Assembly (NCBI RefSeq): GCF_001194135.2
Contig: NC_068996.1
Span: 52,802,234 to 52,866,233, forward strand
From: Octopus bimaculoides
Taxonomy: Eukaryota
Length of the DNA: 64,000 bases
Direction: 5' to 3'
Notes under the pieces: model-generated
Database searches by the model: none
What the model was told of the DNA's origin: nothing
Seen by the model: the letters and a program-made list of their open reading frames with translations, nothing else
Program-made: the position numbers and the translations under genes
Shown here: in pieces, positions 59,309 through 59,360 of the stretch
Numbering within the stretch: position 1 is the first letter of the stretch
How the letters are laid out: each line of letters opens with the position of its first letter

Positions 59309-59360
59309 CAATGATAATGATAATAATCACAAGTACAATGGTAACAAGAATAGCGATCAT
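59309..59360 (-). CDS. Syb: Synaptobrevin transmembrane exon B ([17 protein letters not shown] + phase-1 G)
   Basis: Acceptor gaaattctcttttacag|ATG; donor ATTG|gtaagtt; 52 nt; same length and phase as exon A; entirely hydrophobic. Confidence 0.8.

Follow-up and report, generated by a model that had tools for sequence, protein, structure and literature searches.

The vertebrate v-SNAREs VAMP1, VAMP2, and VAMP3 have a nearly identical SNARE domain and differ mainly in their membrane anchor; in chimaera and lamprey, the exon for the transmembrane domain (TMD) is 52 nucleotides (nt) long, begins at the Met that follows ...WWKNCK, and ends in a phase-1 split codon. VAMP1 and VAMP2 are expressed mainly in neurons and neuroendocrine cells, and VAMP3 is expressed broadly. 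It is debated whether the v-SNARE TMD anchors the protein passively or actively catalyzes the opening of the pore. Splicing is known to diversify other SNAREs: exons 5a and 5b of SNAP-25 are a tandem-duplicated, mutually exclusive pair whose isoforms differ in a few residues and tune exocytosis (PMC2581893), and in the Caenorhabditis elegans syntaxin gene unc-64 splicing swaps the anchor of a neuronal SNARE while the SNARE motif stays constant (PMC1914072). Mutually exclusive homologous exons can also be partitioned between paralogues, a splice isoform separation after gene duplication that has been described for, e.g., CALU and MARVELD3 (Abascal et al. 2015, PMC4494069). Here we describe a synaptobrevin/VAMP gene on the minus strand of a 64,000-nt stretch of Octopus bimaculoides DNA (contig NC_068996.1, positions 52,802,234 to 52,866,233; hereafter the window), in which two 52-nt exons, A and B, offer alternative anchors ahead of two terminal exons, T1 and T2. 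We judge it very likely that A and B are a real alternative exon pair that is used. The explanation that we favor as a whole, which we regard as likely, is that they are tandem, mutually exclusive anchor exons as old as the bilaterians, which were split between genes in jawed vertebrates.

The proposed order of the gene is SNARE exon, A, B, T1, T2, and the parts discussed below are as follows.

60144..60195, minus strand: exon A, the upstream one of the two; 52 nt, translated as MMIILGAIVAAIVTVII with 1 base left for a split codon
59361..60143, minus strand: intron between A and B; 783 nt, rich in poly(T)/poly(A) runs
59309..59360, minus strand: exon B, the downstream one of the two; 52 nt, translated as 17 residues with the first base of a split codon left over
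48726..48751, minus strand: coding part of terminal exon T1, TC TGG GTA GCC AAC AAA TAT GGC TAA, encoding (V)WVANKYG-stop
43482..43507, minus strand: coding part of terminal exon T2, encoding (V)WQVNENK-stop; the 3' untranslated region (UTR) continues to at least ~43280

Exons A and B have the same length, the same phase, and the same borders (ag, then ATG through a final G, then gtaagt), and these features confirm the claim of a preliminary description of this DNA that alternative anchor exons exist here. Exon A reads ATGATGATAATTCTTGGTGCGATTGTGGCAGCCATTGTCACTGTAATCATTG between ttcag and gtaagt. Exon B, which begins ATG ATC GCT and has its final G directly before the donor, reads ATGATCGCTATTCTTGTTACCATTGTACTTGTGATTATTATCATTATCATTG between cag and gtaagt. 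Both are preceded by a pyrimidine-rich tract with a cag acceptor and followed by a consensus donor (G, then gtaagt). They are identical at 33/52 nucleotides and 8/17 residues. Exon A carries Met2, Gly6, Ala10, and Ala11, with Val at position 9; exon B carries Ile2 (codon ATC), Val6, Val9, and Leu10, and has no Gly. When both strands were scanned for AG/GT-bounded hydrophobic exons of 49, 52, or 55 nt, A and B were the sole exons of this kind at the locus and no third anchor exon was found; the remaining two matches, of 55 and 49 nt, were distant unrelated sequences.

Neither tblastn with human VAMP1/2/3 and a cephalopod cytoplasmic domain nor motif scans of 60196-64000 found SNARE-motif exons in the window. 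Since these searches gave no SNARE motif, we place those exons either upstream of position 64000 or inside an N gap at 61542-62490, a run of 949 bases upstream of exon A that could conceal the preceding exon. The gene's link to the brevin R-SNAREs of Pfam family PF00957 is indirect: the mRNA contigs described below join a ...KLKRK(F/Y)WWKN(C/L)K motif to an exon that is identical to B at 49/52 nt. The window exons also have the layout of a TMD exon, with 52-nt A and B starting at the Met after ...KNCK, a phase-1 split codon, and then a short terminal exon.

Evidence that exon B is used came from a query that combined the juxtamembrane segment with the exon B peptide. This query returned a protein (P0001) encoded on two RNA-seq contigs from different runs, L001 (SRR27666087), which begins with an Illumina adapter remnant, and L002 (SRR24189492); the 50-residue protein queries of juxtamembrane segment plus anchor otherwise gave short fragments only. 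The contigs encode a complete synaptobrevin that starts MSGPPQPGG, and its cytoplasmic part contains the synaptobrevin chain of the squid Doryteuthis pealeii (P0021) exactly. In this transcript, B stands alone, in frame, with a normal stop, and is spliced to a T2-equivalent exon. Splicing thus puts exon B into the mRNA of a related cephalopod. The B peptide there agrees with that of the window at 17/17 residues, with 3 synonymous and 0 replacement changes, while the neighboring 3'UTR is 71% identical. Because the changes in B are all synonymous next to a UTR of that identity, the B peptide is under purifying selection. A lack of conservation of B-type anchors among coleoids had been named beforehand as grounds for rejecting the preliminary reading, and the complete identity of B in this second cephalopod transcript speaks against such a lack.

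The 3' end of the same contigs led to exon T2, by aligning to window positions 43280-43487 (71% identity). T2 lies 5.2 kb downstream of T1, and in both the first 2 bases finish a Val codon, after which comes Trp. T1 has the acceptor ...tttgccatgcag before TCTGGG, and T2 has the acceptor ...cttaaatttcag before TTTGGC, the exon following tttcag as TTTGGCAAGTGAATGAAAATAAGTGA. T1 joined to either A or B gives ...VWVANKYG-stop, and with A/B the two terminal exons allow at least four possible C-termini. The preliminary description had assumed that B joins T1, giving VWVA; the lone recovered B-containing cephalopod transcript instead joins B to the T2 type. A B+T1 combination is still plausible, because molluscs other than cephalopods pair both anchor types with both terminal types. 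T1-type endings occur in bivalve, abalone, and chiton isoforms (AWVASTYG, VWLYNKFG, and VYFVTNYG) and in a chiton exon (VWVATTYG-stop). Exact-sequence look-ups in the collection found none of the combinations A+T1, A+T2, A+T2-like, B+T1, or B+T2.

The length of the two exons bears on how they can be combined. In our computed products, either exon alone gives an in-frame anchor with T1 or T2. Because 52 is not a multiple of 3, including both shifts the frame to ...IIDDRYSCYHCTCDYYHYHC... and a Cys/Tyr/His-rich tail, and skipping both yields ...KNCKSG-stop or ...KNCKFGK-stop, an anchorless SNARE that ends after 2-3 codons. Mutual exclusion is predicted from this, since including both exons or neither breaks the reading frame. 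Double-inclusion products are present as gene models in the snail Physella (P0129, isoform X3) and the oyster Magallana (P0068), with the second exon out of frame and Cys/Tyr/His tails; double inclusion in the window would give ...DDRYSCYHCTCDYYHYHC..., which resembles these two models. A-only and B-only isoforms are annotated in snails and hagfish; in cephalopods, the B-only transcript is what we have seen, and the double-inclusion models come from elsewhere. As for how exclusion is enforced, the 783-nt intron between A and B is too long for steric exclusion. An inverted-repeat scan of 58900-61540 gave no convincing docking/selector RNA structure; most of what it returned was poly(T)/poly(A) pairing, along with a handful of weak pairs of 26-30 nt, such as 59963-59992 with 60616-60645. 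We set these weak repeats aside as docking/selector elements, as they are without comparative support.

To see where the two anchors stand among other synaptobrevins, we ran a profile search with a full-length cephalopod protein carrying either anchor and sorted the invertebrate isoforms that it returned. In many invertebrates, isoforms that apparently come from one gene fall into two anchor classes, one with the pattern MM[IL]ILG.I[IV][AG][IV]I[VL]IIII (A type) and one with the pattern MW[AIL]ILI[AG]V[IV][LV]VIIIII[IV] (B type). The NCBI automatic names follow the same division, calling A isoforms 'synaptobrevin-like' and B isoforms 'VAMP3-like', so A/B isoforms are already in the automated annotations of many genomes. 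In the snails Biomphalaria (P0076/P0099) and Physella (P0083/P0103), the members of each pair are identical except at residues 98-113. Three loci show the tandem arrangement in the DNA.

Chiton Liolophura (L003): upstream 52-nt exon at 18257-18308, MMLILGGIIAVILIIII (A); downstream exon at 19235-19286, MWAILIAVILVIIIIIV (B)
Annelid Ridgeia (L007): upstream 52-nt exon at 17318-17369, MMIIMGVIAAIIIIIIV (A); downstream exon at 18283-18334, MWIILIIVILIIITIIV (B)
Spider Argiope (L006): upstream 52-nt exon at 19379-19430, MIAIMVGIGLIIVIIIA (ambiguous); downstream exon at 19635-19686, MWAILIGVVLIIIIVIV (W-type)

B lies downstream of A in the window, the chiton, and the annelid, and the W-type exon is downstream in the spider. 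The chiton locus has T1-type exons (VWVATTYG-stop and AWVATKYS-stop) upstream of a long-tail terminal exon, the chiton terminal exons lying at 21832, 23251, and 25501 of L003, and the order in the window is identical. Because the chiton has this same order of A/B and terminal exons, the window appears to retain a molluscan ground plan of SNARE exon, A, B, T1, T2.

Several anchors found along the way sit outside this simple division. The spider upstream exon (L006 19379-19430; P0071) and a Priapulus isoform (P0101, MIAIMVGIGL...) belong to neither class, with a profile score of ~0 bits; this MIAIMVG exon is perhaps an A exon that has diverged, or else of a third type. The start MIAI is common to the spider exon, the Priapulus isoform, and cephalopod exon B. 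Argiope bruennichi has two copies of an exon at 16151 and 16457 of L006, and proteins from spiders (P0071, P0074, P0077, and P0087) and a mayfly (P0085) contain the two one after the other, seemingly through annotation errors that mask another mutually exclusive pair. The anchor of P0256 (JGI/Logan), MWLILGGVLIVLVIILI, unites Trp2, the hallmark of B, with Gly6, that of A (MWLILGG...). P0002 (JGI) is a eukaryotic B-type synaptobrevin fragment that its source labels as a bacterial flagellar M-ring protein (FliF/YscJ), a mis-annotation.

We scored individual anchors with position-specific profiles, as log-odds of B over A; the training set was 19 A exons and 28 B exons, all from invertebrates other than cephalopods and mostly from spiralians.

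Window exon A: -22.5 bits
Window exon B: +15.9 bits (+16.9 bits without positions 2 and 6)
VAMP2: -27.6 bits
VAMP1: -26.7 bits
VAMP3: +28.7 bits (+16.3 bits without positions 2 and 6)
Hagfish A: -30.8 bits
Hagfish B: +20.8 bits

In composition-preserving shuffles, window B had p=0.016, VAMP3 p=7e-5, and hagfish B p=0.003. Ungapped pairwise matches agreed for exon A, which is identical to VAMP2 at 11/17 positions (p=1e-4) and to VAMP1 at 12/17; the chiton A exon matches VAMP2 at 13/17. Together with the profile score of exon A, these matches support the earlier assignment of exon A as a VAMP1/2-type anchor exon. The human VAMP3 anchor, which the preliminary description had quoted, agrees with the database protein (P0004). 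Its remark that B lacks Gly and is richer than A in beta-branched residues likewise held (13/17 versus 10/17 overall, 6/9 versus 4/9 in the N-terminal half). As a general difference between the classes, we rejected beta-branch enrichment, since the N-terminal half of chiton B, spider B, and VAMP3 has 4/9 such residues, no more than that of A exons. Traits of the B class that window B does show are the lack of Gly6, aliphatic rather than small residues at positions 9-10, and the downstream position. On the strength of that position, the missing Gly, and the profile score, we assign window B to the B class, as a VAMP3-type anchor that lost Trp2, a reading the data support.

Among vertebrates, a HMMER search of the full library that started from a short protein of the B type, together with cluster names, led to VAMP3 anchors. 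The sequences MWAILIAV... or MWAILITV... occur in VAMP3 of turtle (P0178), pigeon (P0179), Tasmanian devil (P0183), and paddlefish (P0185) and in a goby protein (P0176), which shows the mammalian anchor MWAIGITV... to be derived. Against these five proteins, chiton B MWAILIAVILVIIIIIV matches at 13-15/17 positions (p <1e-5 to 1.6e-4) and window B at 10-13/17 (p 0.04 to 0.0002); with the goby left aside, window B matches turtle, pigeon, marsupial, and paddlefish VAMP3 at 11-13/17 (p=0.002-0.0002). An 8-residue run, MWAILIAV, is common to molluscs and to VAMP3 of turtle, pigeon, paddlefish, and goby.

The hagfish, represented by annotations from two species under RefSeq-style names (Myxine) and as UniProt entries (Eptatretus), appear from their proteins to make both anchor types from one gene. 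The A and B proteins of Myxine (P0172 and P0162) and of Eptatretus (P0319 and P0316) are identical within each species outside residues 90-106, and the one additional A/B difference, Leu versus Ile, falls at the split codon, as exon swapping predicts. Alternative terminal exons (...YFC[LV] and ...SQYS), combined with the A/B choice, occur in hagfish as well (Myxine P0317, P0162, and P0172; Eptatretus P0316 and P0319), a parallel to T1/T2 of molluscs. In the VAMP2-like genes of a chimaera (L008) and a lamprey (L005) there is one A exon, whose 52-nt borders are the same, and no relic B exon was found in these two loci or in the brittle star locus discussed below.

What would the choice between A and B mean for the protein? 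In the mechanism that we propose, A or B would be spliced between the exon ending ...KFWWKNCK and either T1 or T2, and each would supply the first 17 residues of the transmembrane anchor, so that the products would carry one SNARE motif on different anchors. Exon A keeps a Gly where VAMP2 has G100 and a small residue where it has A104, with Val (position 9) as the equivalent of C103; exon B encodes an all-aliphatic, beta-branched helix with bulky aliphatic residues at A's small positions. The double mutant VAMP2 G100V/C103V nearly abolishes evoked exocytosis and slows pore opening (PMC5460238), natural v-SNARE TMD variants alter pore kinetics with total release unchanged (PMC7239655), and the TMD is required for binding to BAP31 and synaptophysin, with BAP31 binding differing among brevin isoforms (PMC2132629). 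Because of these published effects of G100/C103 mutants, anchor variants, and TMD-dependent binding, the switch should change anchor flexibility and TMD interactions, and it could thereby alter how the fusion pore behaves, as well as partners or sorting that depend on the TMD, perhaps along an axis from neuronal to general-secretory use.

Such a division of labor, with A neuronal and B constitutive, is a tentative reading, to which we give somewhat less than an even chance. It had been suggested that one gene could supply the roles that vertebrates split between paralogues; at the level of exons this is right, given the VAMP1/2 and VAMP3 classes and the presence of both types in hagfish. A different possibility, to which we give a substantial minority share of our belief, is that the switch is real and does not separate neuronal from constitutive traffic: it might tune pore kinetics by vesicle class or size, lipid environment, or developmental stage, possibly within the same neurons, or it might select TMD partners. 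The studies just cited fit this possibility well, since pore dynamics shift with TMD composition while total secretion does not (PMC7239655), G100V/C103V cripples pore opening (PMC5460238), and BAP31 and synaptophysin binding need the TMD, isoform-dependently for BAP31 (PMC2132629). The combination of at least two terminal exons with A/B also suggests finer tuning than a two-way split. Speaking for the neuronal/constitutive division instead is the distribution of the vertebrate genes, with A genes mainly neuronal or neuroendocrine and the B gene broad. Cellubrevin has been called ubiquitously expressed (PMC2132629).

The age of the pair is a separate question. Same-type identity across phyla (13-15/17) exceeds the identity between A and B within a gene (4-9/17), the signature usually left by an old exon duplication. 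Because the same tandem occurs in chiton and annelid, isoform pairs occur in snails and hagfish, and mollusc B resembles non-eutherian VAMP3, the A/B pair is no cephalopod novelty and is probably ancestral to bilaterians. Common descent of B with VAMP3 at the level of the exon is, on these sequence comparisons, likely. We lean, with somewhat less assurance, toward a fuller history in which the pair predates the protostome/deuterostome split, the ancestral bilaterian gene spliced in either a Gly-hinged or an all-aliphatic anchor, and genome duplications then left VAMP1/2 with A and VAMP3 with B. Jawed vertebrates would thus have distributed A to VAMP1/2 and B to VAMP3, while hagfish would keep both in one gene, as the ancestor did.

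A number of observations weigh against this history. The anchors are short and of low complexity, such that likeness over 17 residues could come from convergence. Ungapped, window B matches human VAMP3 (P0004) at 9/17 positions (p ~0.05 in composition-preserving shuffles) and VAMP2 equally at 9/17; its profile score is carried by few positions (A3, T7, L10, and I13), with a shuffle p no lower than 0.016; and the spider upstream exon and chiton B are equally near to it (11/17 each). It is also without Trp2, which is present in 28/28 distinct training B exons and in all VAMP3 sequences examined. The earlier description of B as VAMP3-type therefore stands in part: the profile score and the matches to non-eutherian VAMP3 support it, and the pairwise alignment with human VAMP3, taken alone, falls short of significance. 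Exact-sequence look-ups of the exon and terminal combinations recovered no A-containing cephalopod transcript and no transcript of the octopus. The brittle star Amphiura filiformis (L004, 32620-32704) has only an A-type anchor, which forms one exon with the SNARE motif after loss of the intron that precedes the anchor elsewhere; it was the sole invertebrate deuterostome in a sampling of bilaterians. Finally, the hagfish evidence for A and B consists of proteins and not of a locus.

Taken together, some of these points would be expected if the TMD exon had been duplicated independently in different lineages, or if B-like sequence had arisen repeatedly under similar biophysical selection, the likeness to VAMP3 then reflecting hydrophobic composition. 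The 9/17 match shared by VAMP3 and VAMP2, the missing class-defining Trp2, the presence of A alone in the brittle star and lamprey genes, and the intermediate or hybrid anchors (spider and priapulid MIAIMVG... at ~0 bits; P0256 with W2 and G6) all fit such convergence. It does not sit well with the agreement of cephalopod, chiton, and annelid in exon length, phase, and A-then-B order, with the MWAILIAV run in molluscs and vertebrate VAMP3 (13-15/17, p<=1.6e-4), with the higher identity of same-type exons across phyla than of A and B within a gene, or with the hagfish proteins of both types from one gene. We therefore consider convergence, which had earlier been raised as a possible source of the similarity, unlikely, and the comparative data lead us to judge common descent the more likely explanation. 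That exon B is a decaying or poison duplicate, rarely spliced or only triggering a frameshift and nonsense-mediated decay, so that the A isoform alone makes protein, is very improbable: exact-sequence look-ups recovered no transcript of the window species and frameshifted double-inclusion models exist in other molluscs (P0129 and P0068), but B has an intact reading frame and consensus splice sites, stands alone and in frame with a normal stop in the mRNA of a related cephalopod, keeps its peptide at 17/17 residues through synonymous changes only next to a UTR at 71%, and belongs to a class conserved across phyla.

Three other features of the window lie within or downstream of the exon pair. 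A poly(A) run occupies ~59630-59660 within the A-B intron, and a long (GA)n microsatellite at ~58895-58997 follows immediately downstream of exon B. An open reading frame of 438 amino acids at 13003-14319 on the minus strand contains reverse-transcriptase-like motifs (...FIDMEKAFDRV... and ...YADDLALIAES...) and probably represents a piece of a retrotransposon lying downstream of the gene.

In our full-text literature search, we found no paper that describes alternative anchor exons for synaptobrevin and none that states an origin of VAMP1/2 versus VAMP3 by passage from splice choice to paralogy, and VAMP is absent from the main text of papers on the partition of splice forms after duplication, including PMC4494069. 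Over hundreds of millions of years, evolution has apparently preserved two anchors on a SNARE that is otherwise the same, a strong argument that the sequence of the anchor matters for function. In cephalopods, molluscs, annelids, and hagfish, the A and B proteins, which differ at no more than 17-18 residues, could serve as a natural experiment that isolates the contribution of the TMD. If our reading is correct, the synaptobrevin/cellubrevin distinction is more than 550 million years old and was first a splicing decision, and the VAMP2/VAMP3 paralogy becomes an example of splice isoforms separated after whole-genome duplication. In a more practical vein, cephalopod single-cell and tissue atlases that use 'synaptobrevin' as one neuronal marker may merge two proteins.

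Set beside the systems with which we began, the octopus gene resembles each and matches none. VAMP1, VAMP2, and VAMP3 are separate paralogues, whereas the window gene and its counterparts in other molluscs, annelids, a spider, and hagfish get both anchors from one gene by exon choice; the Trp2 of VAMP3 and most B exons is absent in window B. The alternative exons of SNAP-25 cover a portion of the SNARE motif together with the palmitoylated linker instead of a transmembrane helix, and their duplication has been described in vertebrates (PMC2581893), whereas the synaptobrevin pair is found in protostomes and vertebrates. The unc-64 gene encodes a t-SNARE and uses alternative 3' terminal exons in place of an internal equal-length pair ahead of shared terminal exons (PMC1914072). 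The survey of Abascal et al. (PMC4494069) started from human mutually exclusive exons, which are absent in human VAMP genes, whereas here the ancestral state is read from invertebrates and hagfish.

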